From Paragordius varius (Eukaryota; Animalia; Nematomorpha), in the NCBI GenBank assembly GCA_964247055.1, contig OZ176055.1, positions 3,782,001-3,846,000 on the forward strand: a DNA stretch of 64,000 bases. Direction: 5' to 3'. This document shows, piece by piece, positions 8,623 to 62,715 of this stretch (position 1 is the first letter of the stretch; every line of letters begins with the position of its first letter). Position numbers and translations under genes: made by a program. The notes under the pieces were generated by a model that did not search any database, was not told the DNA's origin, and worked only from the letters and a program-made list of their open reading frames with translations.

Positions 8623-9702
8623 TCACACCTGGCATTTAATAATTTTTTTCAGCACTGTAGTGAGTTTATATCTGAGTTGATGCATAAAGACGAAACAGAT
8701 GATAAAATTGGAGCCGTATAATATCACGAGCATCATTATATAACTATAAATTTCGGTTACAGACAATTCCTTTCCAACAATTTCCCTAACATTGATGGTT
8801 GAAATGGTAATAATTACGAGCAGGTATATCAGGAATGATGCAACCCCATACCAAAGTATATCATATTCTTTTTGTTGTCGTGTCCTATGCAATGCCAACG
8901 GTGGAATTGTTGTTTTAAACAAACCATTTTCCGTTTTGACAGCATAAGGCTGAGATGCCATTGTAGTTTTAGTATTGGGGTTAGGTGAATCCGGTACCAT
9001 TAAAGACGGGGGTGCGCTTTTGGGATGTGTCAAATCTCGGATTTGGTCAACTTGGTGGATTCGTTTACGTGATCGTTTGATATATATCCACGTTCGAACA
9101 TAAAAATATATGGTGACAAACGCCATCACATACAACAAAACTAAATCAATAATGCTTTCAGCCAAGGTTTGATTGAAGGTTATGGCACATATGCGATTTT
9201 TGGATATTATGTTGCGAAATTTGAAATAACCTTTGGGTGCGGCAGCTAATAACCATAGAATTACCATATAACCTGAGCTCTTATGCGTCAATAATCGTAA
9301 TAACTGACGGTGTCGAGGTATTCTTTGTGAGGTTCCGATAGTTGGGCGACACATATATCGTTGCAAGTTCCATCCTAAAACGACCATATGAAACGAATGG
9401 CACAAAAAAGCCCAATCAATGAGATACAGTAGGGTTTTACACTGTAAACAGGTTATTTTGAGGCGATTTGCAAACGTGTTGAATCGTATAATTACGATAG
9501 TTAAGCCAAAAACATCACAAACCGCCAAACTAGTTAATATGATGTTGCAGACGATGGATTTTACCCTTTTAGATGAAACGATTAGGATGTAAATTAGGAC
9601 ACAGTTGCCAATAATTCCAATGACTGAAAAAATATTTGCCATCACAAATATATTGGATGAGAGCTCAATCTCTAGCGCAACATTTAACCTTGCGTTAGAC
9701 AT
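8623..9702 (-). CDS. Intronless class A (rhodopsin-like) 7TM GPCR, 359 aa, orphan
   Basis: First true ATG is at 9702 (the ORF-track start at 9711 is TTG). Seven hydrophobic segments: TM1 GIIGN, TM2 LAVCD, Cys before TM3, QRY, TM4 W..AAAP, TM5 Y, long basic ICL3 and a basic helix 8. Confidence 0.88.
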   Translation of the reverse strand: MSNARLNVALEIELSSNIFVMANIFSVIGIIGNCVLIYILIVSSKRVKSIVCNIILTSLAVCDVFGLTIVIIRFNTFANRLKITCLQCKTLLYLIDWAFLCHSFHMVVLGWNLQRYMCRPTIGTSQRIPRHRQLLRLLTHKSSGYMVILWLLAAAPKGYFKFRNIISKNRICAITFNQTLAESIIDLVLLYVMAFVTIYFYVRTWIYIKRSRKRIHQVDQIRDLTHPKSAPPSLMVPDSPNPNTKTTMASQPYAVKTENGLFKTTIPPLALHRTRQQKEYDILWYGVASFLIYLLVIITISTINVREIVGKELSVTEIYSYIMMLVILYGSNFIICFVFMHQLRYKLTTVLKKIIKCQV

Positions 9703-10108
9703 AAATACCAATTTTTTGTGACTTAACTTCCACAGTTACACTTGAATGTTTATTTCTTTAAGAAACCAAAATATGCATAATATGCTTTAAATATTGTATA
9801 TTTTATTCTACTGACTCCCCATCCCACACACTGCTGCCATTGCCAATAGAATTAAAAAGCGTTATTTTTTTACTCAATATTTTAATCAAAATAAATTAAC
9901 GCAGGTAAGATGAGATGAAACCCAACAAAAGTATGTGAGATTAACTAAGAGAGGCAATTTAAGGATTAATAATGATTAATTTGCTATTGATAACATTGAT
10001 TACGTAGGTAATAAATAATTTATATAGTTTAATTCACATATATCATAACATTTTAAATATTTATCAGTTTTTAAAGTATTTACTTAATTTATGGATGTAT
10101 CAAAAACA

Positions 10109-13900: not shown

Positions 13901-15106
13901 ATAGGGAGCGCCGCTATCCAAAGAACTATATATCCTAATTTTTTTGAGAGATTCCCAAATAATAAATAGGACTTTGGCGTAAGATTTGCCAACAATATAA
14001 TATATATAACTATCTATTTCGCGTTCCAATTTTAGCGCATAACTGTTATATATTTCATTTATTTTAACAATATTCCAATCAATAAAAATTATCTTTCTTC
14101 AAAGAATTAACCAAAATATAAAATAAAAATTATAAAAACAACCTTTGCAATTAATGAAATAATATGAGTATGGCATTTGACTCTTTGGTGTATACGTAAC
14201 TCAATTAGCCCTCAAAATTCAATTTGGTTTTTGGGAAAACATAAAACTAGTTAATTTGTGATAAGTATATTTTTTTCTATTTTTATTTTAAGTTCAAGTT
14301 TTTTAATTTTCAGATTGGTAATTGCCCTAAAAACATTTATCATAGGTAATGACTGCAGAAATATAGTACACTTATATGATTATTAAGGATGTTATAAGGG
14401 TGAGAGCGCATACAATGCAATCACAAAAGACTTTTTTCGATGTATTTAAATATTAATCCATACCTGTTTAACATCTGAATATAGCGATCTAAATTGAACA
14501 TTACTATCATAACTTCGAGTAAAGTTCAACGAATCGCCAATTTTGTACAAAACTTTACAATGTCTTAAACTATATAATTAGAAAATTGATACTCAATTTT
14601 CGGCTGTGTTATTTTTTGTTCTTGCAACTTTGCATTTTTTAAGTTAAGCTCATTTATTTTTTTCTGCTTATCCGCTAGCCATTTTGAATCTTGATCTTTA
14701 CGTAGTGTTGAAATATCGGAGGTAATTAATTTTTCTTCACTCAAGACTGGTTTACCAAAAATTTGACTAACTTTCTCAATTATTTCTATTAGACTAAAGT
14801 TTCCCCCAATTAATTCTTTCGCTTCACCATTTGAATCAATAATGTATAAACATGGAACTTTGAGAACTGGATATATTTGTGAGAATTGTTTAGATTCTTT
14901 AGTGTCTTTGTTTAACTTGAGAGCAACGGATTTATCATTTATAATTTGTTGCACAGGTTTAGATTCTATATTTTGGATAAAGTTTTTGGATTCTAGACTA
15001 TTATCTAGAAATAATAACGAATTAAACCAAATAGTAGCACGACTAAAAACTTCTTTTCTGACTTTGCTACTGCAATAGCTTCTGGAATGGTATCTTTAAA
15101 CCACAT
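10981..15106 (-). CDS. UBXN4: UBX domain-containing protein 4 (erasin), 7 exons, 414 aa
   Basis: complement(join 10981..11158, 11739..11793, 12354..12633, 13578..13712, 14464..14569, 14593..15004, 15028..15106). All introns are GT-AG, phases are consistent and the total is 1245 nt. N-terminus MWFKDTIPEAIA..QFSQIYP, UBX domain ..VFPKRSF..LRELDLAPS, hydrophobic hairpin, and the diagnostic C-terminus NNTWNGNSTQQM*. Confidence 0.93.
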
Positions 15107-15156: not shown

Positions 15157-16355
15157 ATGGATTTGGATAAGACGCTTTACTGTGGTAACATTTCGGAAGA
15201 AACAACAGAAGAATTGCTTTATGAACTCTTTTTACAGGTATTATAAAAACTTGTTAAATAATAATTTTTATTGATAGTGAGTTAGGTTTATTTCATTAGT
15301 CAGCCCTTTTGTATAAAAATATATTGGTTATAAATATTTACAATTTATTGGTTGATATTGGTGATTTTTATATTATTAACTTAATGCTGTTATATTTTTA
15401 ATTTAAATGGCAACCGGCATTTAATTTTAATGCAAAATTCTTTATTTATATTATGCATATTTTTTATTTTCTAAATAATGTTCTTATAATTTTTTTATCC
15501 TATTGAAAAGTTTTAATAAACATTCTCATTTAAATAATGTCTATTTATTTTTAGGCTGGGCCTTTGAAAGACGTTAAAATTGTTCGGGACAAGGATGGAA
15601 TAAGGAAAAGTTTTGCATTTATCACCTTTTATCACAGTATTTCTGTGCCTTATAGCATTGATCTCATGAATGGAATTCGGTTATGTGGATCCGCACTCGA
15701 CCTTAAATTTAGGAATGGTTCAACTCACGAAAAAGACGAAACGTACATAAGTAAACTAATACAGCATTCTTCGTTAGATCCTATTGCAATTATGCGGTTA
15801 AAGGCATTAAAGTATCAAAACATCTTTGATAAACTTTTTTATAAAGAGTATCCTAATAATGATCATGAGAAATCTATCGTAAAAAATGACTCTCATTCAT
15901 CACCTAGCAAACGTGATAATACCAATATTAAAACATATCAAAATGCTACAATATTTCATTCTTTACCTTCAAACTTTAATCATAACACTGCTGTGCCAAC
16001 CTGTTCCAATATTTATAATCCAAAAAATAATTTGGATTATTTTACACCTCAGTCATATCATTCATATCAGTCACCTTATATTGGCTCCCATAATAACAAT
16101 GGACACGCACAACCAATCCTTAGAGATTCGTATATGCAACATGATTATAGAGGATATGATAACAATATGAATAATCCTTACAGCAGAAATCCCCGTTCTC
16201 AAATGTATGTAGCACATCCCCCTTTAATGAGATCATCTAATAACAGAAATTTTTCTGATCCATCCTCAAATCGAAATACACACTATTCATCACTTAGGTC
16301 TAACAGAAATAATGGACATCACAAAGATGACGCCTACAAACGACGTTACAAATAA
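15157..16355 (+). CDS. RBM7: RNA-binding protein 7/11 family (NEXT complex RRM), 2 exons, 293 aa
   Basis: join(15157..15237, 15555..16355), 317-nt GT-AG intron. DKTLYCGNISEETTEELLYELFLQ|AGPLKDVKIVRDKDG...FAFITF.HSISVPYSIDLMNGIRL matches the RBM7 RRM; low-complexity N/S/Y/H/R tail. Confidence 0.92.
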
Positions 16356-19512: not shown

Positions 19513-22500
19513 TTATGTTTTATTGCATAATAAAAGTTCTTGGTATATTGTGTGATTGGGTACTTTATATATCAGCTGATTATAGAGGGCGTTCTTAATT
19601 TTTAATGCAATCTCCCATGCCGTATTTTGAAAATTTTGATTATTTTCAAAAAAATTAAAATCATCTTCATTAATTTTTTTGGCGGAAGAATTTTCCAAAA
19701 CATTGTGGGAAACATTTGAGGCTTGATTTTGAAATGTTAATAAATTTTCTAAAAGTAAAAAAAATCACAAATATAAAAAAATAGAAAGTTTAGATGTAAA
19801 TACAAATAGTCATTCAATATTATATATCGATGTGTAATCATACAGTAATAATTGACATTATGCAGAGGACAATATTTAGAAGCCTATACAATCATATTTT
19901 TTTTCAAAACACTGTGGAGGCTTTTAAACCGTAATTTTTGTTAGGTAAAACTTTCATTGTTTAAATATGTATATCTGTAACACAATCAATAAAACATTTA
20001 ATTGACAATTACTATTAATCTTCCATTAATAAGAAAAAATCTTGTTTTTAAAAGTTTAGCAGGGTTGTCTATTAAAGAAAAATTTATCTTTTAGCCTTGA
20101 CGTTTTGTCATCTGATTTATTTTTCAGTGTAATTAGATAGTACATATGCGACAAACAACTGATTGGTTTACATACGTTTTTAAATTCTTAAACACGAAAA
20201 AAATGCAAAAAAGTTACAAAAGCTGAATAGTGATCGCAAGTTAACACGACTTTTAATTATTATATGCAAAATAAACACAATAAGAAAGCGACAAAGAGCT
20301 GATTATGATTTATCAGGGATAAAAAATAGATCTCACTTTTTAAATCTTGAACTATCTGCTTGAAGGAATGATGGGAGCTTAAATGTTGCATGGTTTTAAC
20401 ATATGTTTCCATATTTTGTTGCAAAACATTTGGCGTTGCCATGGTAACGGCACTAAAATCAGCTGCTCTGGATAGCTGTGTTTTAGCTTCTGTGATATTT
20501 TTATTTATGATATTATTTGAGGAGTTTTGATGAAAATTATTGTTTGTTAAATGTTTGGGATATTCTGGGAATGGGGTAAAGAGCTAAAATTGTTAATATC
20601 GAAAATTAATGAAAAAAATTATTTAAAAAATATATAAAATAAAATAATAACATTTACAAAATAAAACAATTTTAAATTTAAAATATTTATAATGTTATAC
20701 TACCTTAATCATATTTAATAAATTGGAATTTTTCGGAAAACCATCAGGTGATTGCGTGAATGAAGCAAACATTTTATGAATTTCACATACTTCTTTAAGA
20801 CGATTCTTCCATATTTTGTAATGTAGAAATGATTGAATTTCAAAACTAATTTTTAATAAATAAATAAATATACTAAATATTAAAAATAATAAAAAATTAT
20901 TATATAATTATATTATTTTTAAAAAAATATAATTTTTATAACAACAATGTTAAATCATAATTTTATAAAAATTAAAAAATAATTTTTAAAATTTTAATTA
21001 AATTTATAAAATATTATATCATATATATATATATATATATATAATCAAATACTTTAATTAAACTATCAATAACATATAAATTTAATATTTTTTTAATTTC
21101 TCTTACCATATGATATAAAGGCAAAAATATTGAGTAATTTCTTCTTTGCTATTTTTAATATTGGAAGGCGGCGATTTTTCAATTCTTTCTTGAATATGTC
21201 TAAAGAATATTTAATTAACATATAACATATACCATATACTTATTAATACTTAATTAATGAAAAAAGCAAATAATAATTTATGAAGATATGCTGTAATAAA
21301 TTATATATTTAAAATTAAAGATGTTTTTCAAAAAATATTATTATGTAAATTTATGAACAAAAATATTTATTTAAATATTAGAGTTCTTCGAAATATTCAT
21401 CATATATATGATACAAAAAATAAATAAACTAAAAATTGAAAATACGCTTACAAAATATGTTTAAAAATTATTCTATTTAATAATAAAAAATAATTTTTTA
21501 TCAAATAAGCTTATTTTGTTGTAAAAGTAAATAATATATTTAAATATCAGTAAAATGATTACAAATATTTATCTTATAAAATTATTTTTAAAGAATTTTT
21601 TTTAATAAATATTATATTTATTAAAAACTTCAACTTTTTTGAAAAATTATTAAAATATATACAAATAACTTTTTTATTACATTTTAGGACAAATATATCT
21701 TAATTTACGGTAAAAACCAAAATATTAATACATTTAATAATTATATATCTAAATTATTACTAAATATATTGAATAGAAAAAATTTTTTTTATATAATATT
21801 AAATTTAATAAATTAAAGATTAATTTTTGAAAAAATAATATATTATACAGGCATAATTTTAACGTATCAGAATAGATTGTGAGGGCACGTGAATCATCTC
21901 CAACGTGATGTTCCATAAAATCAGCTGATAGAATAAAATATGTAATGGCGTCTATATATATAAGGGTTCGTTTTGTGCGGCAAATCTGTATGAAATAAAT
22001 ATTAATTAAATAATTAAATTATATATATGTATAAATTTAAAATTATAAATTTTCATAAAATAATATATGATTGAATATAAAATATATTTTTATTTAAATT
22101 TTGAAAATATAAAGATTAATAAATAAATTAAATATAATTTTATAATATTATACTTATTATTTGAAAAATATTAATATTTATCATATAAATAAAAATTAAT
22201 ATATTAGAAATTTAAATTTTTTAGATAATAAAAATTTAAAAATTATCAATTAAAATCAGAGATGAAAATTACATAATATATATATATATATATATATGTA
22301 ATGATTTATGGCCAACAAAGTCCTATTGCCACCTCCCCGTGGTGTTGGCCGGGGCATAAAAATGCGCTGACTGCAAAGGCCAGTTTCTTATAATCTTTAA
22401 AATCATTAATTGTACACAACGGCATGTGTTACGTAAAAAATCGCCTCAGATCGCGAAGTAAAATATTATGAAAATGAATTACTTCCGGAGTCCCGCCCAT

Positions 22501-25500
22501 GGATCTTATTTTTACTTTTAAATAAAAATAAAATTAAAAAAAACATTTTTTTATAATTATCTAAAAATATAAATTTAATATATAATTTGGGAAAGAAAAG
22601 ATATTTTATGCAAAAATATAAAATCTAATAAATTAAATAATTTGAAAATATATAAAAAATATATTTTTTTAAAAAAAGGAATTTACTTCAACATCAGCTG
22701 TACGTTTTAATTTTTTGGCCACACGATACAGCTGATTATATGTCACGTGTGGCAAGTCATCAGGTGGTAGACCAACACGTGACCACCATTCTTTGATAGA
22801 CTTGACAGCTGGGAGCCACATGACATTAGTGCCTATTAATCATGTGTGTAGATGAATAATTGAATAAAATGTGATATATTTATTAATTTATTAAAACATT
22901 TACAGTTCAAATTCATCCTTGAACAATCAAATTAACCCTAATAATAATAAATTATGATTCGGACTAATATGACTCATCATTAATAAGAAATATGTAGTTA
23001 TGGCATAGTTTATTATTTTTCAGTAATAATTTATTTTTATTCATATTTTAATTTTTTAAAAAATATAGGTAATTTTTAATCTTAAAAAATACTTATTTTA
23101 GGGGAATTTGAGGTTTAAATGGTATCTTCTTTTACAAAATTTTAAAAGTATAAAAACATCTGATTAAAAAATGGCTTGTTAAAAAATTATATTAATTTAT
23201 AATTAATTTTTAATTAAATTTGAAATGGTTTAGCTCAAAAAAGTTTTTATGATTTTTAAAGATATATATTTAAGTAATCTTTCAAACATGTGTTATATAT
23301 ATAAAATTAGAATTTAATTAATTATTTATTAGTCTAAATATATTTTTATTCATAAATAAATTAATTTTTAATATTTAAAATTAAATAGATATATCAAAAA
23401 ATTAATTATTTTTCAAAAAAAAATAAATTTAAGTTATAAATATTTAAATTTAATATAATTAAAAAAAATTATTTAAATATATACTTTTGTTATTGCCATT
23501 TGTATGATTGGCCCATGGTATTTCATATAAAACATTTATTTCATTCTATTCAGGAAATATTAAGGAAAAAAATTTAAATTATTCATAAAATTTAATTTAT
23601 ATAAATTAAAAAAATATTATGTTAAAAAATAATATTTATTGAAATAGGAAAAGAGCAATTGTTTAAAATCGTATTATAAAGTATTTAATATTTTTTTTAT
23701 AATATTTTGATTATTATTTAAAAAAAATTATATCAATAAAGAAAAAAAACTTCAAAATTGAAATTAAAAATAAATAAATATAATAATTAAATATTTTATC
23801 TTCTACAACAATATATGTTAAACGCAAATATTTTTGATTAAAAATATCATTCAAAAAAAGAATTTAAAAATTTATTTATGAATTACTTATTTTTACATTT
23901 TTTATAAAAATAATAATTATCTATATTATTCAAAAAAAATTTGAAGATACTAACCTGAGATAGAATACTAGCTGATTGGCTTATTTCATTATTAGTTGCA
24001 CAAATTTCTTGATTATTGCGCACATAAGAATTATTTCGATTATTATAGTTAGTTACATTAATTTCTTCAATATTACGCACACTAAATTCTTCATGATTAG
24101 ATACACCTATTCCATTATTAGTCACACTAAATTCGTCATTGTTACGTACATAGGTATTTTGATTATTATAATGTGTTACATTGAATTCGTCATTAGTAGT
24201 TACATTGATTCCATTATTATTGGGAATATTATTGATAAGCAGAGATGAATTTATATTTTGATTCGTATTGTGTGCATATGTATAATCAAGATTTAAATTT
24301 GAATTTAATTGCTGAGTCCTTCTCGACAATGAATATCTATCATTATTGTTACTAATATTAATATTGTTAGTTACATAATTATCATTATTAGTTATGTAAC
24401 TATTTTGTTCATTATTGATAGTTACATTATTCATAGGATTGTTTATATTCGATGTATTATATCTTACACCAATACGATTGAGATGATCCAAACCATATTG
24501 AACTATGGACGAACTTAGAGTTGTTGGCACCGCTGACGTATTACTGAAATCGGCAGCTGATCTAGACAGCTGATTTTGTGTAACAACGGATGAATGTTGT
24601 TGTCTAGCATTATACAGATACGGCAAAATAGGTATTTTCTTAACGAGTGTTAAATGTAACCGAACCGGAAGAGTGCTAGGCATTACGGTGATCAGCTGAT
24701 GTTTGTCTTTTTTATTGTTTTTTTGAAGTTTACGTTGGGACTTTTTTGCACCTTTCTTCTTTTCGTGTTTTTTGGAATGCTTGAAATGTTTAGATGTGCT
24801 TCCGTGCTGTTTATGATATGTTGTTTTGTCAAAATTAATTTTATGGAAAGAGTTTGTGGATGATTCCAAATTATGTTCATCATTCGCTTTTTTCTCGATA
24901 TTATTGTTTTTGTTATTAATATCAACATAATTATCAATTATCTCTTTATTAATATTGGTAGTTGTAACATCAAATGTGCCATTTACTATTTCCATATCCG
25001 ATTGAAAAGGGCGTTTATTAGCCCTTACTATATTCTTATCATCATTAATAATTACATAACTTTTCTCATTTTTGCTTATATTAATTGGCTCATCAATAGT
25101 TTTAATTCCATCATTAATCGTTGTTGTGTTAATCTCATCATTAATATTGTTTGCAACATTCAAAAAATTACTTAAAGACCAATCACCACCAACATTCCCG
25201 CCAAAACTTTCACTGTTTGAAACAGCTGATTCTCCGATCTCATTCTTGGTTAAATTTTTGATCTTGGAAATAGCTGATTCACTGTTCTCATTATTAGTTA
25301 AATGACAAATTTTATCATTGGGAACAGCTGATTTCTTATCTGATTCGTTATTAATTACACTGGAAATAGCTAATTCGCTGTTTAGTTTTTTGGGGACATT
25401 AATTTTTTCATTATTATTATTATTAATTTTATTAATTAAATTATTTTTGTGGTCGTTTTTTCCAGAAATAGAAGCATTAATAACTTTCTAAACAAAAAAT

Positions 25501-28500
25501 TTTAAATTACCTATTAATTTGAAATAATAAAAAATATAAAAATAATATATAATTGGATTTTGTTTCAAATTATTTTAACAAAGACTAATGCATTTTACAA
25601 AATTATTCATTTTTTAAATATTGGATTTTTTTAAATCATTTATGTATAAATAAATTTTAAAATTATTATAATATTATATATATAATTAAAATAAAAAATT
25701 AAAATATTTTAAAAAGTTATATGGACGTTTTTGTACAAATAAATATTTTTATGAAAATTAAAAAAAAATATTCTAAATTTTACAAAATTAATAATTTATT
25801 AATTAAAGCTTTTTTTAACATATAAATCATTTCAATATATAAAATACTTTATTTTCTGGCGGACAAATTTTTGGGATGATTGGAGGAAGCACAAATAATT
25901 TCTAAAATAAAAAAATAATATAATTAAAATATATAAATAATATAAAATTATAACAAGTTAAAATTTATTTAAACGAATATATTTTAAATTAATGCAGTAT
26001 TTAGAGTATTTATTAAACAAAAAATAAAACAAAACAATATTACAAAATTGATTATTTTTATTTAAAAATCTAATATCTACATAAAAAAGATATAAAATAT
26101 ATTAAATTCAAAAATAATTTAATCATAAAACTAATTAATACCCCAATAATGCAGGAAAAAATTGGTTTTGGTGGAATCTAAAAAAAAATAAATATTTAAA
26201 ATATAAAAACCCAACATATTTTATTCAAAAAATAAAAAATAATTTAAATATATTAAAAAATATAACGAACCGAAAATCATTTTAAAATTAATTAAACTAA
26301 TTATAGATAAAAAATTTTTGATATTAAATTTTCTAAAAAAATATTAATTATTAAAATATTTTAGTATATTGTATGAATAATAAAATATTTAATATCACTA
26401 GACAACAAATTTTGTTTTTTAGCAGACATTCTTATAAATTGTATCAAAGTACATAAATAGTATATCTGAAAAAAATTGGCCTAGCACTTAAAAATTCTTT
26501 TTTATTAGGGTTCTCATGGATAATTTTTGGCCCCGATTTAAAATTAAACTCAAAATTTTCAAAACCATGATTTGATTCGAAAGAGCGAAAAAATTGTTTC
26601 TTTAAAATGGTAGTTGGTCATTTAAATAAATCTAATGTAAAAATTATTTGTCTTTATATGGTCAAAATTTTCAATTCTAAAATAGATAAAAAAAATCACA
26701 AACTAATTAAAAAACCATATAAATTATTTTTGTGTAATTACTAGGGTACCATTAGAAAAAAATTAAAAAAAATCTTTAAAAAAGCTTTTGGCTTGCTTTT
26801 TTAATAATAAATTTATCAAAATTATTTTACCTAGTGGATACTGAAATACATAATAACTTATATAATAGTTATATTAGATCGAAAATACCTTAACTATATT
26901 CTTAGTCTTTAAAATTTTAGAATTATAAGCCTTCTAAATAAAATTAATTAATATTTATGAAGTGGTATTTTTTGAAAAACAAAACTTAAAAATGGTTGTT
27001 TTGAATGAAAAAGCATAAATAAGTGTTCTAATCCAAAAAACTTTCTTGTGTTAACAATTGCCATCTAGACAAGGTTTGAGCTATTTTCATCAATTAGTTT
27101 TAAAAACAAATTAATTAAGATAAACGCTCTCGCTTCCTATCTCCAATATTGATGTAAAACATATAGTAATTTGATAAAGTTTTTATCACTCTTTTGAATG
27201 ATATATTACAAATGGCATTTGATTTTTAAAGAAAAACATTTATTATTATAATTTTAATAAAGATGGCGCATAAAAAAATATAATTCTTAAGTGTAAATAT
27301 CATTTTTATTTCAAATCTACTGATAGAATTATAGTAAATACCAAAAAATGCAAAAAACTCGAGTGGCAGAAAAATTTGTCTAGTGTAATAATTTAAAGAT
27401 AAATAACATAAATTTTATCAAATAACGTGTATAAATTATTATGGAAAAAATTCAAAAATCTTTAAGATAAAAAACTGAATACAGATAATGCAGATTATTT
27501 AAAATAATTATTAATATAAAAAAAATTTTTCAACAATTTTTCGAAAAATCATATTTACAAATTAATTATAGCACAAAAAATTTACTTGTTTAAATAATAA
27601 ATGCCGATTAATATCGTTTTGATTTTTTCCTTTTTTAGCGTCATTATCTTGGATATTACATTTTCGATTATCTTCTTTAGTTGCCACGGTAACCGATTTA
27701 TCAGCAGTTGTTTTAGAACCGGTAATTAGTGTAGCTGTCGAATTTTTATTAACCTCTGTGGTCACCATGGTAACCGTTGAATCAGCTGTTTTAGCATTAC
27801 CACCTTTTGTTTTCACGATAAAGTCGGAAGATACTGATTTTTTTATATTATCAGATGTTGTGAAACCGTCCTTTGTCGTTACCATAGGAATGCCGTTAAA
27901 CTTTTTTCTTTTGATACCAGCGGCATTATCAGCTGACACTGCGGTGGCGAATAACTTTTCAAGCACTGGTTTAAAATCATTAAAATCTCCAAGGGTTTGT
28001 TTTATGAGCCGTTGAGTTTCATCCATTTCACATGGAAGAATCTAGAAAGAAAATTAAAAAAATATAAAGGTGTTGTTTGTTATCTAAAAATGTAAAAATA
28101 AATTTTTCTATATATAAATTAAGTTTTACGTACAATTGTGAAAAATTAAATAATCAATGGCTGATCAAAACAGCTTTAATATTTTTGTATATATTAATTA
28201 TAAATCTAGAAGGATATTAAAACACAAATTAAAAAAATGTTGAATATTAATAAAGACGTATGAATAATAATTTTTTCCTAAGGGAGAAATATATGATCAG
28301 CTGTGTTAAAAACATTAATGTTTATGGCAAAAGAAGAAAGGGGTGACCACTCTTTTCTTATAATATAATAATATAGAAATGGACTTGAATCAAAATAGCC
28401 TTACGACAAAGCAATGTAAAGATCGTAAGTTATGACTAAAATTACTTCGTGGCTAGAAAACCCCGAATCTGGAGTTCTGAACCTTACAATGCATATTTAC

Positions 28501-30139
28501 ATATATATATATATGTGAAATAATTTTTTGTATAACCTTAACAGGCGCACCGAAAATAGGTGTATCAGCTGTTGTCGTCGTTTTTGTCACTAAACCATCA
28601 GCTGATTCAACTGTTGCTAAATCAGCTGGTTTCTTTTTATATAAAGGCACATTTAATTTAATACTATTGCTTTCATTATTATTATTAATATTGCAATTTT
28701 GATGACTCATATTTATTATTGCCGCTGCTGCAACATTCTTTTTGTTTGAGGTCAGCTGATGATCTGGAAACAGCTGATTAATATCACAGCTGTTGTTTAA
28801 ATGATGACTATCAGAATCTATGTATTAATAAAAAAATAAACTTTATTATAGTATGATAACGAACTAACTTATGTGCTAAGATAAATAAGTTTTATATTAA
28901 AAATCTATAAAATTCTTTCTTTCTTTGAAATTCACCCTAGAATAAACAAATTAACCGTAAAATAAGTTGCATAGTTATATTTTAATAAATATGTGAAGTC
29001 CCGTTTTAAATTGACATATAAAAAAATACTCCAGGGATATACAACACGCTTTTTTAGCTGGGCAAAAAGGTGCCCTAAAAATGTTAAAAAAATAAAAAAT
29101 TGGATATTAATTAAAAATTTATAATTTATTATCTCTATTTTGCAATTTTAAGCAATGAAATATTATTAAAAAATCAAGACATAAAATATGTTTTTTTAAA
29201 AAATATTTGTATAATATTTTTACATATTGTCCGTATAATTTCAGTTTTTACTAAAAATATATTTAACATTCCTGTATTAGACTATTTATGCCCCATAAAG
29301 ACAAATTTCATTATAAGGAATGATGAGTAAGTTATATCACCAAAATCACTTATTTATTTTTAGAGCGGTGAATAATTAGCCAAAAAATTGTTTATATATA
29401 TATTATTTACAAGTTTTTTTGATAAGAACGAGTTTGTTCAAAAAAATTTAAAATTCAGTTTATTAAATCAATTAATATAAAAGTTAATACCACTAAAAGA
29501 TGTAGAAGAAAAATAATTACTGGAATGTTGATCAGCTGTTGGTTGCCGGTAGTAATCACCGTTGCCATTAGCAACTGCAACAATGACGTCATCGCCGACA
29601 CGTGATGAAAGCTCCCCCAACCGTGATTGGTGATTGGCAACACGTTGTTTCCGTGCCAGCTGATCCCGAAGTTTGAGTTCCTTGATCGAAAGATTGCCAG
29701 CAGATGATGCAGCGGTTAAAGGTGAAGCGTCAAAGACCTTATTTGTAATCAGAATTGTCGGTTGTTGATTAGTAGATGAGTTTTTTAAATTATTTGTATT
29801 ACTCCTATCATAATTACAAGAATCAGCTGGTCCCGCAAGTTTGCGCAGGCCATCACTTTTCATCGCGCTTATAACACAAGTTATTTGCTTGGTTGATGAA
29901 TTATGCGACGGTTTAATATTTCTATTTCCGATGACGTCATTTTGGTTGCTACCAATGCTATTGTTTTTGTGTTTTGGGTCGACAACCATATGATTGTTGT
30001 TTCCAATGGTGTTATTGTTGTTTGCGACGGCAAGATTTTTTTTATTTCCGGTGACGTCATGGTTGCTAACGGCAACGCCACCATTTGTTGACGACCCGTC
30101 GGGGAAAAAAGGTAAGAAGTGTTGCGCATTAATATTCAT
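19513..30139 (-). CDS. AFF4: AF4/FMR2-family super-elongation-complex scaffold (AFF1-4/lilliputian), 13 exons, ~1356 aa
   Basis: complement(join 19513..19748, 20337..20583, 20704..20845, 21107..21199, 21849..21985, 22687..22832, 23485..23545, 23955..25487, 25848..25901, 26142..26177, 27586..28041, 28537..28817, 29491..30139), 4071 nt, all phases consistent. PIFGAPVKILPCEMDETQRLIKQTLGDFND resembles the cyclin-T1-binding segment; WSLSNFL; LPVRLHLTLVKKIP resembles the AF9/ENL-binding motif; AKKLKRTAD...YIDAITYF..IYSDT is the C-terminal homology domain. Last-exon stop is less certain; the symbol denotes the family, not a specific paralog. Confidence 0.85.
22310..22500 (-). pseudogene. Unidentified protein-coding fragment inside AFF intron 8, homologous to ~56440-56660 (+)
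   Basis: Shared nucleotide blocks (aaactggccttt..gt.agcgcattt...tg.ccc.gccaacac..gg..ggt.gcaataggactttgttg) and shared frame EVI.F.NI....RFF.*..P.C..NDF..Y.KLAF.VSAF.CP.QH.G.VAIGLC. Confidence 0.5.
22898..23110. mobile_element. Degraded second copy of the 21-bp-unit foldback MITE
   Basis: catttacagttcaaattcatccttgaacaatcaaattaaccct followed by ...aaattatgattcggactaatatgactcatcattaat matches the reverse complement of 5680-5832. Confidence 0.65.
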
Positions 30140-31811
30140 TTTTTAGTATTTGTTATTTTGTGATTATATTCATTTCAAAACGTTAAAATATATTTTGGAC
30201 AATGCTAATGATGTTATGTAATCAACTGATTATATATTGAGCAATTGCAAGGAAATTGTTTATCAAAGGGTTGGATTTATTTTTTGGGATGAAATCTAAA
30301 AATAAATAATATTTAAATATTTTCATTTATATTAAAAAAGAGATTTATGGCCATGTGAATGAGCCTATTGAGCCAACTCCTTCACATGGAAAAGTAATCC
30401 AGGTGAGTGAAATAAAATTTTATATATGTATATCGAAGGTTAAAAAAATTTGAACATGTATCCAAAATTATTTTTCAAGCAAGCGTGTAATGGAGTTTAT
30501 AATTTTCTGTCTTGTATATATATATATTTAGCGTTTTCTAATGAAATTAAAGTTTGGCAGCATTTAAATGAACATTCTAATCTTCTGCAAGTTTATAGAC
30601 ACGAATCAACAAACAAGATTATATAGAGGACTTTGTCATGCATATACTTTCAATCTATATTAGGTATTGTATTGCTGATTTTTTTCAGAAAAATGGATAC
30701 ATATTTAACAATTTTATTCCCATCAAATAAGAAACAGGCCATTCATTTAAATTTTAAAACAGGTTGTTAAAACTGTAATTTTTAGGTTTGCTAAGGAGAA
30801 TATATATATATTCAATATGAAGCTCTAATAAAATAAATAACATTTGTATCTTATTTTCAAAATCTATGTGCTATAATACATTTTCAATATTGTTTTTGTT
30901 TTGGTGGGTCTGTTAAGAAATTTAATAGTGTAAATACAGTTTAAAAACAAAAATTGAAAATTATATTATATATACACTGGATTTCCAAAGATGTTTTGAG
31001 CAAATTATGACTGTTATTGAAACATTAATCATTAGCAGGTTCTGAAAAATTATATGATATACTTATGTATAGGCAAGATGATATTAATCTCTTGAAAGGT
31101 GATTAGTATAATGAATAGGAGTTATTATGTAACATTTTAAAAGAAAATTGATTCCATGAGTAATGTCAAGCTTTCTTCTGATGCATGACATTTTTTTGTC
31201 TGTGCTTTAAGTGTTTTTACCCTATATCCGTTATTTATTAACTCGTAATTTTCGAAAAAATTTCGCCCTTATCATATTTATTCATTGTATTTGAAAAGGG
31301 ATTGTTATTTATAAATAATTTTAAAAATTCTCAATAAAACCCACGAATAGATGCCGAGAAGTGTTATACATATTCATTATAACTTGCTTTCTAAATAAAT
31401 CTAAATTGCCGCCTTAAAAATCTCATTCACCTCCCTTAAACATATTTTTCTTCATAAGCCATATGTGAATGAGCCAATTTTTTAGATCATTCACATGACC
31501 CTTGGATTTACAGGGGAACAAAACCAGCTAAAATCTTAAAACATTAATTATTGTGATAATTTTTATAAACTTTATCAAAATAAATAAATAAGGTAGTATA
31601 ATATTATGTAAATATTAAAATTTGGGAAAGTAAATAATGGAGGATGATTTTGTTTTTCAAATTTTTTGCATACAACAAAGATTTATGCGTTGTGAATAAA
31701 ACACAAAAATGGTAAAATGTTTCATAATTTTGAAGGCAAAATTATTAAATAAGGTATAAATGTATAATTTTAGCTATAACAGGATAGTGACATTAACCTG
31801 TCTAATTGATT

Positions 31812-35907: not shown

Positions 35908-36317
35908 CAATAAATGATTGTTTTTCTGTGGTTTTTGCACACCGGATTTTGGCATACTTGGCAAAATATAACTGATTTTTTGACAACAGATCTTGGACAC
36001 AAATAGAACCCTGTATAATATATAACTATATATATCTTTTTGGCACATTAATATTATTGCGTTCCAAAATCCCTTTTCTAAAGCCAAAAAAGATGATTTT
36101 GTTAATTTTTTGTTTTTCTTGCGGACTTGAGGCAAGTTTTTTACTAATTTCATCTAAAACGCCCATTAATCAAGATACCTAAATTTGTATAAAGATAATA
36201 TACCTAAAAAGGCATCAAATTCTATTTTTAAACTAATCCAGTTTACCAATGAAGGTGGGCATTTGTGTACATAATCAAATTATATATGTCATTAGTTATG
36301 ATAGAATTGAATTGTTC

Positions 36318-36725
36318 GTACCGTCCTCACATACGGATCCGAATCCTGGCCGATGTCAAAAACAAATAAATCCAAACTCATAAACGCTGAATCCAAACTA
36401 CTGAAAACAATATTATTGGCACCCAAATCCTCTAAATTCAATTATACCGAATCCATAAACCCGTACCATATACTCAATCTCAACCCCATCAACAACGTTA
36501 TCAGAAATCTCCGGTTACAATGGGCTGGACATGTTGAAAGACGGCAAGATACCCACATTCTTAAAACTATGAAAAATTACTCGGTTGAACTATCAGCGAA
36601 ATCCAATAATAAAAGACCTCGAATCGCTTGATTTAAATCTAGAATTAGCCAAATCAAGAGAAGAGTGGAAAAAACGGGTGTACCGTCATTTAATGGCGAA
36701 TCTCCATACAAATGAATGATGAGGG
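36318..36725 (+). pseudogene. RTE-clade LINE 3' fragment (post-RT region and tail)
   Basis: PVLTYGSESWPMSK...KLINAESKLLKTIL...IRNLRLQWAGHVERR...KRPR, then a short 3' end finishing in aatgaatgatgag; 5'-truncated. Confidence 0.82.
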
Positions 36726-38115: not shown

Positions 38116-39771
38116 CTAGCTGCGCTGTGACGTAGTCTCACTGATAATTATTCTTATTAATTTGCAATAAATAAAGGTATTGGAGATAAAAAAAAATAAA
38201 AACACATTTAATAAAAGAATGTTTTCCATTATTCTTTTACGGGTTTTTGCATAGGCTCAAATATTGTTTACTCGAAATTGATTATATTTAAATGCCTCTT
38301 GATTGGATTTATTTTAAGATTTTCGTTTTAAGAAATCATGGTTAAAAGTTTTATTTTGAAATTGTGTTCACACCGCTGGGAGCAAGGGATATAAAAATAA
38401 TCATTTGTGGTCTCTTTTTAAAGGTAAGTATGATATTATGCAAATTTCCCAAAAATGTGTTTGAATTAGCTACAAAACCAGGCCATTTTTGTATGGCGAG
38501 TTTTAAACCGGTAGATCCCTACCCATAGACCTATATGGAAAAAGCGCTGAGTTAAATTTTCCTTTATAGGGAAAATATTAGTAATCATCTTTGATACCAT
38601 CGTCTCATTTGTTAATCTGCCCCAACATTAAATAATCGTTATATGATGGTGTATTTTTAGGGCATAAAGGCCCCAAATTAATGGCTAATAAAAAAACACC
38701 TGTTAATTTACCTAGTTACGGGTAACATTTCATTTTAATGAGATCATATGGCTTCATAAATTTTCTGATAGCTCCAAAACAACGCGATTTCCATATAGTG
38801 GCGCAGTCTTTGGCAGTTAGCTCCCTACCCAGGGGCAGTTATAAAAAAAGCGCTGGGCAAAATTTTTGCCTTTATAAGGAATATCTGGAATTTTCATGGA
38901 TTCCATATGTTCCTATTAGTCAATTAGATTTTCTGAAAGTTATCTCCAAAAGCATGCTGTATCGATATGGTGACGCAGTTTTACGCGGTAGCCCCCAACC
39001 AGGGGCAAAACAAAAATACGCTCGATTTAATTTTTTGCCTTAATTCGGGTACCTGGAATCATGATTGATTCCATATGCTCTCGTGGGATTTTCGAATGCC
39101 TCGCAAGGGTCTAATTAAGGGATAATTTATCGAAACCGCTCTACTTAAATTTTTGCCTTTTTACGGGTAATATTTTATAAGCCCTTATTGATCTCATATG
39201 GCCTGATAAGCTTTCTAAAATTTGCCTCCAAAGTCACGCTGTATCCATATGACGGGGCAATTTGCGGTTATCTGTTTACCCAGCAGCCAATATAAAAAAA
39301 ACGCATGACTAAAATTTTTCCCTTTTAACATGGAGTGCCTAGAATTTTCGAATTTTTACGGTCTCATGCCTTGGGCGAAAAATAGATTCATAAAATTATT
39401 TTTGACTTGGTTTTTTCAAAAAAATGGCATTTTACGGGGGGAGCGGGAAAAAAGAGGGCCGTTAAAAAAGCGAGCTGACTATGTTCGGCGCCATCGAAAA
39501 AAAAGTAAAAAAAATCATATTTAAAATCGAATGGTCCAACACGTTTTCTGGAAAGTTGTCTCAAAGACACGATTTTTGTGGACTTGTGTTTTCAAAAAAC
39601 CGTTTTTTACACCGGGTGGGTCCGAACTGGGGGCCTAATAAAAAAAGGCGAAGCTATTGTCGGGGAATTCATTAATGATTATATTTTTTCGATATTTGGA
39701 TTTGAATGTGTCTACTGGTTTTTTGAAACAGATCACAAAGCCAGCATTTTCCATTTTTATAAATATATAGA
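38116..39771 (-). mobile_element. Non-autonomous Helitron, copy B (~1.66 kb)
   Basis: CTAG at 38116-38119, TC start at 39771-39770, A|T insertion, colinear with copy A. One arm of the 3' hairpin is deleted (ctagctgcgctgtgacg). Confidence 0.85.
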
Positions 39772-39956
39772 TTATGACCCTCGTTTAGATTTGTTAGGAG
39801 ATTGTTTTTATGAAAATATTGTACTTTTATTGATGGCATAGGACAAAATATAAAGGTGGAAAAATAATATTCTGTTAACTAATATTTTAATACTATTTGT
39901 AATATATAAAACATTGAATAATGCTGCTTTTATTTTTATCAAATTTTTTTGGTACA

Positions 39957-42307
39957 TCTATCTATTTATAATAAATGGGACATGCTAGCTTTGTAATATG
40001 TTTTCGGAAAACCGGTAAACCACTCTAATGCAAATGTCTAAAAAATATAATCATTAATGAATGCCCTGACAATAGCTTCGCCCTTTTTTGAATTAGGCCC
40101 CCGATTCGCGCCCACTTCATGTAAAACGGGTTTTTTCGAAAACACAAGTTCAAAAAAATGGTGTCTGTGAGACATTTTTATGGAAAAAGTGTTGGACCAT
40201 TCGATTTTAAATATGATTTTTTTTACTTTTTTTCGATTGCGCCGAACATCGTCGGCTCGCTTTTTAATTTAGGCCCTTTTTTTACCCGCTCCCCCCGTAA
40301 AATGCCATTTTTTTCAAAAAATATAAGCCCACAAAAATAATTTTTTGAGTCTATTTTTCGCCCAAGGTATGAGACTGTAAAAATTCAATATTCCATGTAT
40401 TCCCTGTTAAAAGGCAAAAATTTAGTCGAGCGTTTCTTTTATATTGGCTGCCGCGTAAGCAGAAACCCGCTAAAAACAGACCCGTCATATTGAAATAGAT
40501 GCTTGGGGCTAAATTTCAGAAAGCCTATCAGGCCATATGAGTTCAATAGCTGCTTAAAATATTACCCAACAAGGCAAAAATTTAGATCGTGCGGTTTTTT
40601 AACATTAGCCGTTTAGGCCCTTTACGCCCTGAAAAATGCGCCACCATACAATTATTTTTTAGTTTTGAGACAATTTTTCCAAAAATTAAGGAGAGCATAT
40701 GGAATCAATTATGATTCCAGGTATTCTCCGTGAAAAGGCATAAATTTTAATCAAGCGCTTTTTTTGTATCAGCCTCTGGGTAGGGAGCAACTTGCCTAAA
40801 ACTGCGCCACCATATCCAAATTGCGTTGTTTAGAAGTTAATTTTCAGAAAACTTATTAGGTCATATTAATTTAATAAGGGCCTGATATATCACCCGTAAA
40901 AATGCAAAAATATAAGTCGAACGGTTTTTTAAATTAGCCGTTATAGGCCCTTTACACCCTAAAAAATGCGCTATCATTGAGCTATTATTTAGTTTTGAAG
41001 CCATTCTTCCAAAAACTATTAAGAAATAAAGAAATGCTGATTCCATGTATTCCCCTATAAAGGAAAAATTTTTTGAAAATCTTTTTTATATTGTCCTCTG
41101 GATAGGGGGCCACCCGCCAACAACTGCGCCACCATATCGATACAGCGTGACTTTGGAGGAAAATTTTTTAGAAAACTTTTCAGGCTATATGAGTTGGCTT
41201 GAATTATTACCCCTAAAAAAGCAAAAATTTAAGTAGAGCGGTTTTATTAAATTACCCCGTAATTAGGCCCTTTTTCTGAAAATAAGCCACCATAAAATAA
41301 CTTTTTGGTTTTGAGGCAATTTTTAAAAATCCCACGAGAGCATATGGAATCAATTATGACTCCAGGTATCCGAATTAAGGCAAAATTTTCAATTGAGCGT
41401 TTTTTTTGGTTTGGCCCCTGGCTAGGGGGTTACCCGCATAATACTGCGTCACCATATTGTTATAGCATGTCTCTGGAGCCAAATTTCAGAAAACTTATAG
41501 AGAAACATATGGAATCCAAAATAATTCCAGATATTCCCCATATAAAGGCCAACGCTTTTTTATACCTGACCCTGAGCTAGAAGCCACCCCCCAAAAGCGC
41601 CACTATATAGAAATTGCGTTGTTTTGGGGATAATTTACAGAAAATTTATGAAGCCATAATAGCTTAAAAGCTAAAAATATTACCCGAAACTAGAGGAAAA
41701 GGTCAGGCTTTTATATTAGCCTTTAGTTTGGGGCCTTTATGCCCTAAAAATACACCATCATATAACGATTATTTGGTGATGAAGTATTTTTCAAATAACC
41801 CATGAGATGATGGTATCAAAAATGATTCCATTGGCCCTATGAAGGCAAAAAATTTTCCTCAGCGCTTTTTCCATTTTATGGGTAGGGGTCTACCGATTTA
41901 AAACTGAGACGCCATAAGAAAATGGCCTGGTTTTGGAGCTAATTCAAACACATTTTTGGGAAATTTGCATAATATCATACTTACCTTTAAAAAGAGACCA
42001 CAAATGATTATTTTTTATATCCCTTGCTCCCAGCGGTGTGAACACAATTTCAAAATAAAACTTTTAACCATGATTTCTTAAAACGAAAAGCTTAAAATAA
42101 ATCCAATCAAGAGGCATTTAAATATAATCAATTTTGAGTAAACAATATTTGAGCCTATGCAAAAACCCGTAAAAGAATGATTAAAGACATTCTTTTTATT
42201 GAATATGTTTTTTATTATTTTTTTATCTTCATTACCTCTATTTATTGCAACTAATTAAAAATAATCGATGAGACTACGTCACAGCGAAGCGTGACAGGGC
42301 CAACTAG
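39957..42307 (+). mobile_element. Non-autonomous Helitron, copy C (~2.35 kb), inverted relative to B
   Basis: Starts tctatctattt...; ends with intact hairpin GTCAC-AGCGAAGC-GTGAC then agggccaaCTAG|T (42304-42307). Carries more internal subrepeats than A or B. Confidence 0.88.
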
Positions 42308-42410
42308 TATTTTAATATTTACAATTTAATTTTATAATATTAGCGTAACAATCATTTTATTATTGATTGTTTATAACTTACATTATTAATTGCTCTTTAA
42401 AATTTAAAAA

Positions 42411-43557
42411 ATGAAACGCATATCGTCTGTTGTATTAAAAAATAATTCAAAAAAACAAAAAATATCTCAAAACACGGCATCCAAAATTGAAAGTAAACTG
42501 ACAAAAGCAAAAGACAAACAGTCAACCGATAGCAAAAAAACGGAAAACCATCGCAGAAAAATGAGATGGCAAAATAACAATATTAAGGGAAAAAGTTTAA
42601 ATAAACCAAGTACTGTAACGAAACCCAAGAAATCGGTAGAAAATAAAATCGAGAAAGTTTTAAGAAGTCCAAAAACAAAAGCAGAAACTTCAAAACGGAA
42701 CATGAAAGAGACTTGCACCAACAAAGTTATCAAACATAAAAGTCATCAATCAAGCAAAAACAATGGCTCCAAAGTGAATCGCAAGGATGAAATACCTAAT
42801 AAGAAGGAAAAAGAAAGGAAAATTTCCAATAAACGTGTAATGGAAGCTATGAAAAATGTAAAAGGAGGCAATAAGAGATTAAAAGCTGAAAATATACCTT
42901 TGGAAATTAAAACATCAAATTTAAACTTAAGTATTCTATGTCAAAATAACTCGATTTCAGAGTTAAAGATGGAGAAAAAAATCGATAATACCATAAGTGA
43001 ACATATTAGTATAACTAATAAGGATGGGAGAGACACTGCTATACGAATTGTGCGAAAAACGAATATATTACCTAAACAACAAATAGTGAAAAATGATGAA
43101 ACCCCAAGAAGCGAAACTAATTCTCTCCACAGTAGAAGTGAGGTCAGGCAATCTATTGCCAATCGAGTCCCAGGTTATTATACCCATAGAGTTATTAGCG
43201 GAAAACCTGCACCCTATCGTTCGTGCGTTTGGCGAACTCGATCTGCAGATGCCCGCAAGTCATCGCCAATGCCAAGAATGAAAAAGCTAAATATCTTGTG
43301 TTCAAAGTACGATCTTTAAAATTATAAACTTATTCAATAACATATCATTTTTAAACTACACTAACTATAGATGTAAATGTGCGTACTTTGGAAATTCTGA
43401 TTCAAACGATGATCTTCCGTACATTAGAAGGAGAAGAGGTAGAATTTTTACAGAACCCGTACCTATCTGTCCATTGCCTGGCCAGGAAAACAGTCATAAT
43501 CTGCCAGAAATAATGGGTCCCAATTGCTTGGCCCCTATATTTTCTTCCCACTTTTAA
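42411..43557 (+). CDS. Lys/Ser-rich basic hypothetical protein, 2 exons, ~360 aa
   Basis: 302-codon ORF from a true ATG. A 64-nt GT-AG intron (43307..43370, with CTAAC just before TATAG) joins it to a further 61 open codons ending TAA at 43557. No family recognised. Confidence 0.65.
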
Positions 43558-62640: not shown

Positions 62641-62715
62641 TTGCTAACATATCATAATTAGAAATTGTAAATATCGAAAACACAGGATATATAGCATATT
62701 TATTTTATTATATTA

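Follow-up and report, generated by a model that had tools for sequence, protein, structure and literature searches.

A recurrent symmetric CAGCTG word in the exons of a hairworm AFF-like gene: candidate dimer sites within coding DNA

Introduction

Short words that are over-represented in coding DNA are familiar from bacteria, where they include DNA uptake sequences, Chi and the CCWGG driven by VSP repair. In vertebrates, exonic transcription factor sites ('duons') and exonic enhancers were reportedly described by Stergachis in 2013 and by Birnbaum in 2012. The in vitro AP-4 site is flanked by A-W and W-T (AWCAGCTGWT). AP4 forms homodimers only and binds CAGCTG (PMC3698521, PMC7914591), so the site of this obligate homodimer has two-fold symmetry. 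In Drosophila, CAGCTG is a housekeeping core-promoter motif (PMC3375229, PMC8842121). Hairworm mitochondrial genes are another setting for which coding palindromes have been described (Mikhailov et al., 2019, as that work is cited in PMC10380579). Our literature search returned no paper that pairs CAGCTG with Nematomorpha or hairworm; AWCAGCTGWT as a string was likewise absent, and no relevant report dealt with an excess of CAGCTG in coding exons.

Here we describe a nuclear gene from the very AT-rich genome of the hairworm Paragordius varius, analyzed within a 64-kb stretch of DNA (the window), in which a CAGCTG-centered word recurs throughout the coding exons.

The AFF-like locus

The motif-bearing domain coincides with a single transcription unit, an AFF/lilliputian-like gene. 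Its rebuilt model has 12 exons in one open frame of 1321 codons, canonical GT/AG at all junctions and a minus-strand CDS of 3966 nt, which replaces the 4071 nt of exon given by a first-pass annotation of this DNA.

19513-30139, minus strand: AFF/lilliputian-like gene, ATG at 30139, stop at 19513
29521-30139, minus strand: exon 1; CAGCTG at 29533, 29657 and 29824; CACGTG at 29599; three TGACGTCA
28537-28817, minus strand: exon 2, 281 nt; six CAGCTG, at 28566, 28599, 28623, 28753, 28771 and 28787
27586-28041, minus strand: exon 3; CAGCTG at 27783 and 27930; X-boxes at 27680 and 27761
26142-26177, minus strand: putative micro-exon, 36 nt; motif-free, AG/GT-flanked, in frame
25848-25901, minus strand: putative micro-exon, 54 nt; motif-free, AG/GT-flanked, in frame
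23969-25487, minus strand: exon 6; CAGCTG at 24554, 24567, 24693, 25223 and 25325
22687-22832, minus strand: exon 7; CAGCTG at 22695, 22729 and 22806; CACGTG at 22744 and 22776
21849-21985, minus strand: exon 8, AFF4_CHD match; CAGCTG at 21922 as full ATCAGCTGAT; CACGTG at 21886
21107-21199, minus strand: exon 9, motif-free
20704-20845, minus strand: exon 10, without a perfect motif; near-match ATCAGGTGAT at 20743
20337-20583, minus strand: exon 11; CAGCTG at 20460; X-box GTTGCCATGGTAAC at 20435
19513-19748, minus strand: exon 12 (last); ATCAGCTGAT at 19571-19580, with the stop codon 58 nt further on

The model is uncertain in two respects: the donor of exon 6, which may be 23969, preserving the frame, or 23955, where the GT is stronger, and the micro-exons at 26142-26177 and 25848-25901; no CAGCTG site is affected by either. 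Alternative exons may lie at 20059-20187 and beyond 20337. The 3' third of exon 6 (about 23969-24500) is Asn-rich, carries tandem repeats and contains zero CAGCTG.

The gene encodes a highly divergent protein rich in Asn. The sole Pfam match, obtained with single exons, was that of exon 8 (45 aa), which aligned to positions 39-80 of the PF18876 (AFF4_CHD) profile at E=0.0077; its score of 16.2 bits falls short of the curated cut-off of 24. Exons 1, 3 and 6 gave no Pfam match, and neither the N-terminal homology region nor the Ser-rich/ALF central region was recognized in them. Exon 6 had 0 relatives among 1.84 billion representative proteins, and neither exon 7 nor exon 8 had a match in the PDB. 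A search for homologous proteins with exons 1 and 6, under a length filter that would mask full-length proteins, returned zero matches, and an exact-product look-up with the exon 1 ORF found no match.

CAGCTG is concentrated in the AFF exons

CAGCTG occurs 25 times in the window, compared with 2.7 ± 1.8 times in dinucleotide shuffles, 0 of 100 of which reached 25. The AFF-like gene holds 23 of the 25 copies, and every position reported for them by the first-pass annotation carries the word. The rebuilt gene model reproduces the reported division into 22 exonic copies (5.5 per kb) and one intronic copy. Of the two copies reported elsewhere in the window, that at 2134 is present and the second lies at 3684, not 3685.

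28298-28303, no strand assigned: intronic CAGCTG in intron 2, the sole perfect intronic copy

The sites are spread over 10.6 kb, from the first exon to 58 nt before the stop codon, and 4 of the 12 exons contain none. No copy spans an exon junction, which rules out that the word is created by splicing. Exons occupy 37% of the locus and hold 22 of its 23 perfect sites, an observation that runs against an array of sites acting in DNA.

The six neighboring genes present a different picture. Their recognizable coding segments are free of CAGCTG, as had been noted by eye, and of the 19 opportunities that about 7.1 kb of their coding DNA offers, none is taken; where the protein permits the word, these genes keep the near-misses CAGCTA, CAGCTT and CCGGCTGAT. 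No comparably enriched word was found in any of the six.

Null models were compared with the 22 exonic copies. Base composition predicts 0.31, in agreement with the earlier estimate of well under one, and shuffling of codon order gives 0.78. A synonymous-codon shuffle that keeps both the protein and its codon usage yields 4.2 ± 1.8 copies, with a maximum of 12 in 5000 shuffles; because of these values, the codon-shuffled null that had been named beforehand as the refuting test does not reproduce the observed count. Chance or base composition as the cause of the excess is thus rejected by composition, dinucleotide and codon nulls alike. An unbiased k-mer scan, run at k = 6, 7 and 8, was led each time by the CAGCTG family.

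The word also leaves its mark on codon and amino acid use. The core occupies 22 of its 36 synonymous opportunities (61%), including 7 of 9 Q-L and 10 of 12 [STPA]-A-D. Of the 53 Gln codons in this gene, 11 are CAG, and of its 87 Leu codons, 11 are CTG; seven of the 11 lie inside the word in each case. The copies read as x-A-[D/V/A] (14), Q-L (7) and N-S-C (1), which bears out the multi-frame reading proposed for them; with three frames in use, the codon null exceeded and codon choice distorted, the proposal that the bias acts on nucleotides and not on amino acids stands. Peptides compatible with the motif number 33, four-fold above the 7.5 ± 2.7 in shuffled protein. The word is therefore frequent enough to set codon and amino acid choices of the AFF-like gene.

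The word is a symmetric 10-mer

The recurring unit is the symmetric 10-mer AWCAGCTGWT. On the coding strand, the flank profile of the 23 sites has A at -2 in 19 and T at +2 in 16; the inner flanks are T (13) or A (6) at -1 and A (14) or T (7) at +1. This palindromic profile is what one would expect of a reader with two-fold symmetry, and the CAGCTG core with two-fold symmetric flanks is what characterizes an AP-4-type site. The full AWCAGCTGWT occurs 10 times in the CDS, where 0.04-0.78 are expected, and the 22 perfect cores compare with at most 4 for each one-mismatch class. With one mismatch allowed, the AFF introns contain 4 matches to the 10-mer versus 0.33 expected, few in number and two of them possibly within decayed or alternative exons, and the remaining window contains 5 versus 4.7 expected. 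The near-matches 5' of the ATG and in introns include the following.

30221-30230, no strand assigned: near-match ATCAACTGAT, 82 nt 5' of the ATG, in 5' UTR or promoter
20154-20163, no strand assigned: intronic near-match AACAACTGAT, possibly in a decayed or alternative exon
20294-20303, no strand assigned: intronic near-match AAGAGCTGAT, immediately beyond the exon 11 donor
23155-23164, no strand assigned: intronic near-match AACATCTGAT

Companion palindromes share the same exons

Three other palindromes are enriched alongside CAGCTG. The CRE palindrome TGACGTCA occurs three times in the window, each time in an AFF exon (codon null 0.10; 0 of 3000 shuffles reach 3), two of these copies being non-independent members of a duplicated coding module. 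All three full RFX-type X-boxes of the window are likewise in AFF exons (codon null 0.16; 0 of 3000 reach 3), and exon 1 has additional X-box-like words with a 3-nt spacer. CACGTG is found four times in AFF exons versus 0.47 under the codon null, a count reached by 2 of 5000 shuffles; the positions reported earlier (21886, 22744, 22776 and 29599) are all occupied and all exonic.

29584-29591, no strand assigned: CRE palindrome TGACGTCA, full form ATGACGTCAT
29932-29939, no strand assigned: CRE palindrome TGACGTCA, full form ATGACGTCAT, within the duplicated module AGCAACCA..TGACGTCA.CGGAAAT
30052-30059, no strand assigned: CRE palindrome TGACGTCA, in copy two of the duplicated module
20435-20448, no strand assigned: RFX-type X-box GTTGCCATGGTAAC, exon 11
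27680-27693, no strand assigned: RFX-type X-box GTTGCCACGGTAAC, exon 3
27761-27774, no strand assigned: RFX-type X-box GTCACCATGGTAAC, exon 3

Outside the AFF exons, the palindromes of the window are diverse and none of them recurs, which rules out a general enrichment of palindromes.

What the word may be for

The reading that we favor, with a probability of about 0.5, is that the AFF-like unit is overprinted by a selected 10-mer whose copies are predicted homodimer sites of the AP-4 kind, and that the exons double as cis-regulatory DNA, as the CRE, X-box and CACGTG palindromes within them suggest. A two-fold symmetric 10-bp word, A-W-CAGCTG-W-T, would overprint the transcription unit and be maintained by nucleotide-level selection that overrides synonymous codon preference, and selection for it would raise the content of Q-L and [S/T/P/A]-A-D in the protein. 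The copies are candidate double-stranded DNA sites for a homodimeric bHLH(-ZIP) protein of the AP-4 kind (TFAP4, fly cropped, worm HLH-11), predicted to form a dense array of identical copies along the gene body, and the fewer CRE (bZIP), X-box (RFX) and CACGTG (Myc/Max/USF-type) palindromes would share the AFF exons with them. The counts, null models, symmetry, gene selectivity and co-occurring palindromes are direct observations on this DNA; from them we infer a protein dimer that would read it and the probable identity of that dimer, and we would guess that binding serves to control the transcription of selected genes or to mark their chromatin.

Among the options offered by the first-pass annotation, exonic binding by a bHLH dimer agrees best with the data, in view of the symmetry and of the co-occurring CRE, X-box and CACGTG. 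Exon marking, exon definition or a splicing signal is unlikely, as the word is missing from 4 of 12 exons and from all neighboring genes; a splicing enhancer would be strand-specific and present in most exons, whereas the profile is palindromic and intron-containing neighbors lack the word.

A broader proposal, which we advance only tentatively, is a gene-selective 'gene-body code', in which the word and its CRE and X-box companions would be distributed across chosen genes, read by predicted dimeric transcription factors, and serve as a licensing, chromatin-organizing or co-regulation mark that dictates codons and amino acids.

The rival that survives best, although we regard it as unlikely, is that the word functions in RNA, its self-complementary copies compacting the mRNA, binding a duplex-recognizing factor or linking mRNAs into granules. 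Self-complementarity would allow each copy in the (pre-)mRNA to pair with any other as a perfect duplex of 6-10 bp, and the symmetric flanks suit such copy-to-copy pairing equally well as they suit a protein dimer. A role in RNA would explain why 22 of the 23 perfect CAGCTG are exonic, and the main point in its favor is that sites in exons carry a coding cost without obvious reason while kilobases of intron are free. The predicted minimum free energy of the CDS is -758 kcal/mol, whereas 10 codon shuffles average -709 ± 14 (z = -3.6). In the corresponding structure of the CDS, 12 of the 22 sites are base-paired with a second copy, but many palindromes lower folding energy automatically, so the energy is not independent evidence and folding does not discriminate an RNA role from a DNA role. 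Against an RNA role, the co-enriched palindromes are canonical bZIP, RFX and bHLH-ZIP DNA sites and not arbitrary self-complementary words, and near-matches occur in excess within AFF introns and 5' of the ATG.

Less probable still is a neutral, sequence-directed bias of mutation or repair that turns near-cognate words into CAGCTG with no function, for which the enrichment of CCWGG by very-short-patch repair in E. coli, or a biased gene-conversion hotspot, offers a model. In its favor, perfect cores far outnumber one-mismatch variants (22 versus at most 4 in each class), and a strong drive could override codon and amino acid choice as seen here. However, the six genes within 40 kb are untouched and keep their near-miss CAGCTA, CAGCTT and CCGGCTGAT, and three more unrelated palindromes are enriched in the AFF exons, for which one repair specificity does not account.

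A cause at the protein level, namely a repeated S/T-A-D or Q-L peptide needed by the AFF protein, is effectively refuted by the failure of the protein-preserving codon shuffle to attain the observed count: [STPA]-A-D (12 times) and Q-L (9 times) do exceed expectation several-fold, and the A-D of K-R-T-A-D in exon 7 presumably matches a conserved position of vertebrate AFF, but one DNA word encodes unrelated peptides in three frames, and Q-L is written CAG CTG in 7 of 9 cases despite the rarity of CAG (11/53) and CTG (11/87).

Significance

If a DNA-binding dimer reads these sites, the AFF-like gene would show, more clearly than any other animal case, a regulatory word taking precedence over the protein code, a claim based on the 61% use of opportunities, the fourfold excess of motif-compatible peptides and the untouched neighbors. 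The long-debated effect of transcription factor sites on codon choice ('duons') would then be directly measurable, and one could ask why an extremely AT-rich genome places regulatory sites in exons and not in its abundant AT-rich introns. Should the word work at the RNA level, it would represent a new type of signal by which mRNA pairs with itself. In both cases protein evolution is distorted by the word, and analyses of codon usage and selection in this genome would be misled; if the gene-body code is true, the word shapes the evolution of the encoded proteins.

Comparison with known systems

Among the closest relatives of this word are the sites of AP-4/TFAP4, Drosophila cropped and C. elegans HLH-11, which have the CAGCTG core and symmetry in common with it and, for AP-4 in vitro, the flanks as well. 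Known AP-4 sites number one to few per target and are scattered over promoters and enhancers, whereas the AFF-like gene has 22 in 4 kb of coding DNA. Its vocabulary is also that of Drosophila core promoters, namely E-box1 (Ohler motif 5), DMv2 (TGGYAACR) and E-box2 (CACGTG) (PMC3375229, PMC8842121), and half of the AFF-gene X-box is a TGGYAAC-containing word, as in DMv2. The fly motifs lie within about 100-200 bp of the TSS; in contrast, the AFF-gene words extend over a 10.6-kb gene body, are mostly exonic, and so lack the TSS proximity of a Drosophila-type core-promoter E-box.

Palindromes embedded in protein-coding DNA occur within the same phylum in hairworm mtDNA, which, to the extent that the citing paper describes it, has long, individually differing inverted repeats, unlike the one short recurrent word of the nuclear AFF-like gene. 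The bacterial words resemble this one in being short, over-represented by hundreds-fold and fitted into coding sequence in any permitted frame, but they are prokaryotic, genome-wide and not gene-selective, and most are not palindromic transcription factor sites. Duons share with the AFF-gene word the placement of a transcription factor recognition sequence over codons and a proposed bias on codon choice. They are subtle, involve many factors and are found genome-wide, whereas the AFF-like gene uses a single word at 61% of its opportunities and its neighbors are spared.

Concentration of CAGCTG in one gene

The hexamer CAGCTG occurs 25 times in the window, compared with 2.7 ± 1.8 times in dinucleotide shuffles, none of which (0 of 100) gets to 25, and the DNA is strongly AT-rich (17-36% GC per 2 kb). 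Twenty-three of the 25 sites fall within 19573-29824, in a putative AFF/lilliputian-like gene, and match exactly the positions listed in the first-pass annotation, which had proposed that the coding exons of this gene are saturated with the word. That annotation also correctly counted two sites outside the locus and placed one at 2134; the other is at 3684 and not at 3685, and both are in non-coding or repeat-like DNA.

The gene was modelled from open segments spliced at canonical AG/GT sites, which gave 12 exons on the minus strand and a single open frame of 1321 codons (ATG at 30139, stop at 19513; CDS of 3966 nt). Two micro-exons (36 and 54 nt) are putative, and the exon 6 donor may be the strong site at 23955, which disrupts the frame, or the weaker one at 23969, which preserves it; none of these choices affects a motif site. 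The AFF identity is also putative: exon 8 alone resembles PF18876 (AFF4_CHD), scoring below the cut-off (E = 0.0077), while exons 1, 3 and 6 had no match in Pfam, exons 7 and 8 none in the PDB, and exon 6 none among 1.84 billion representative proteins. This model places 22 sites in exons and one (28298) in intron 2, the same split reported previously.

CAGCTG in the 3966-nt AFF CDS under three null models
Base composition: expected 0.31, observed 22
Codon order shuffled: expected 0.78, observed 22
Synonymous codons shuffled, protein and codon usage kept exactly: expected 4.2 ± 1.8 (maximum 12 in 5000), observed 22

The expectation from composition is thus well under one, as had been estimated, and the codon shuffle, proposed earlier as the refuting test, did not reproduce the count. 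In an unbiased k-mer scan of the CDS against the synonymous-codon null, CAGCTG and its extensions ranked first at k = 6, 7 and 8, with ATCAGCTG found 12 times versus 0.67 expected. No description of such a phenomenon was found in the papers searched.

A 10-bp palindrome held sharp

Read on the coding strand, the flanks of the 23 sites are non-random and symmetric (A occupies -2 in 19 of them and T occupies +2 in 16; -1 is T in 13 and A in 6; +1 is A in 14 and T in 7), so the site profile is the palindrome A-W-CAGCTG-W-T. The full 10-mer, AWCAGCTGWT, is present in 10 copies in the CDS versus 0.04 to 0.78 expected, and some deviations from it are due to reading frame, since the reading xxC-AGC-TGx bars A after the core, where a stop codon would arise. 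The only good extended match beyond the AFF locus is a solitary, full AACAGCTGAT at 2132-2141 in apparently non-coding DNA. Perfect cores (22) greatly exceed any one-mismatch class (at most 4 each), so the sites are held sharp rather than decaying.

Effects on codon choice and protein sequence

Synonymous choice permits the core at 36 places in the AFF protein, and it is carried at 22. Q-L is encoded as CAG CTG in seven of nine cases, even though Gln is CAG at only 11 of 53 codons and Leu is CTG at only 11 of 87, and [S/T/P/A]-A-D, which is compatible with the longer CAGCTGAT, uses the word in 10 of 12. The protein sequence itself is biased toward the word, because it contains 33 motif-compatible peptides versus 7.5 ± 2.7 in shuffled protein. 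The word is read as x-A-D/V/A (14 sites), Q-L (7) and N-S-C (1); these three frames yield unrelated peptides, which excludes a peptide-level cause and, with the codon null exceeded, bears out the earlier proposal that the bias acts on nucleotides. The 3' third of exon 6 (23969-24500), an Asn-rich region of degenerate 21-24-nt tandem repeats, entirely lacks the word, unlike the remaining exon, and these coding repeats may be a recent expansion that has yet to gain sites.

Neighbouring genes and repeats

Six neighbouring genes provide ~7.1 kb of coding segments:

8626-9735, 7TM receptor-like ORF
14568-15095, UBX/thioredoxin-like exon
15555-16352, RRM protein
42408-43316, Lys-rich ORF
about 47.2-52.8 kb, WD-repeat gene
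58.8-60.9 kb, Hsp70-like gene

These segments permit the word at 19 places and use it at none, in line with its reported absence from the exons of other genes. The near-misses CAGCTA, CAGCTT and CCGGCTGAT remain unconverted, and no comparably enriched alternative word was found in the six genes.

The following features also lie in the window:

22310-22379 (+), predicted HDV-like self-cleaving ribozyme (Rfam RF01787 drz-agam-1, 38.5 bits; gathering score 37), within a GC-rich island of AFF intron 7
about 56470-56645 (-), second copy of the ribozyme region, ~175 bp, opposite strand
4244-5400, 38700-41600 and 62600-63860, dispersed repeat family (GC about 0.36-0.45) without CAGCTG, with recurrent ORF-like fragments on both strands (e.g. 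...GPNWGPNSKKG...)
6208-7135 (-), endonuclease-like fragment
36311-36628 (+), fragment

The two ribozyme copies probably represent 5' termini from a retrotransposon or SINE family, and the last two fragments look, by eye, like LINE remnants.

Companion palindromes

All three copies of TGACGTCA (CRE) in the window are inside AFF exon 1, and all three full X-boxes (GTNRCCNNRGYAAC) are inside AFF exons 3 and 11; the codon null predicts 0.10 and 0.16, respectively, and 0 of 3000 shuffles attain three. CACGTG, previously noted four times in the locus, has four exonic copies versus 0.47 expected. In AFF exons, every perfect palindrome whose arms are 4 bases or longer belongs to the CAGCTG, CRE, X-box or CACGTG family; those elsewhere in the window are diverse and do not recur. 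Two CRE copies are non-independent, since both lie within a composite module duplicated in exon 1 (29925-29960 and 30045-30075) that contains, in this order, an X-box half-site (AGCAAC), CRE and CGGAAAT (ETS-like). This module encodes the repeated peptide N/H-D-V-I/T-G-N and may represent either a repeat at the protein level or a regulatory module that was duplicated.

Biased repair or conversion would account for the sharpness of the sites but fits neither the untouched neighbouring genes nor the three other palindrome families, and is an improbable source of the word.

Exons versus gene body

AFF introns contain four matches to the 10-mer (at most one mismatch) versus 0.33 expected, a number attained in 0 of 300 simulations, and a further near-match lies 82 nt 5' of the ATG, whereas matches elsewhere in the window are about as frequent as chance predicts (5 versus 4.7 expected). 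This is modest evidence that the enriched domain is the AFF transcription unit, because two of the intronic matches may sit in decayed or alternative exons. The introns flanking exon 11 have open, slightly GC-richer stretches (20059-20187 and 20263-20336) with inexact copies of the word, ATCAGTTGTT giving I-S-C and ATCAGCTCTT giving N-Q-L, and these stretches may be alternative or decayed exons.

Possible readers of the word

A two-fold symmetric word suggests a reader of like symmetry, which could be a protein homodimer bound to duplex DNA or an RNA duplex of two copies. An RNA-level role, from which exon concentration would follow naturally, appears unlikely. The predicted fold of the CDS is 49 kcal/mol more stable than codon shuffles and pairs 12 of 22 sites with another copy, but stable folding is an automatic result of many palindromes.

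We favor a reader acting on DNA, a putative protein homodimer, with a probability of about 0.5. The main objection is that perfect sites are overwhelmingly exonic, which a DNA array need not be. A DNA-level reader is favored because enrichment extends into introns and the 5' flank, because the companion palindromes correspond precisely to canonical sites of bZIP, RFX and bHLH-ZIP dimers, and because AP-4, a factor that dimerizes solely with itself, binds CAGCTG (PMC3698521, PMC7914591). In flies, CAGCTG is a housekeeping core-promoter motif, alongside TGGYAACR and CACGTG (PMC3375229, PMC8842121).
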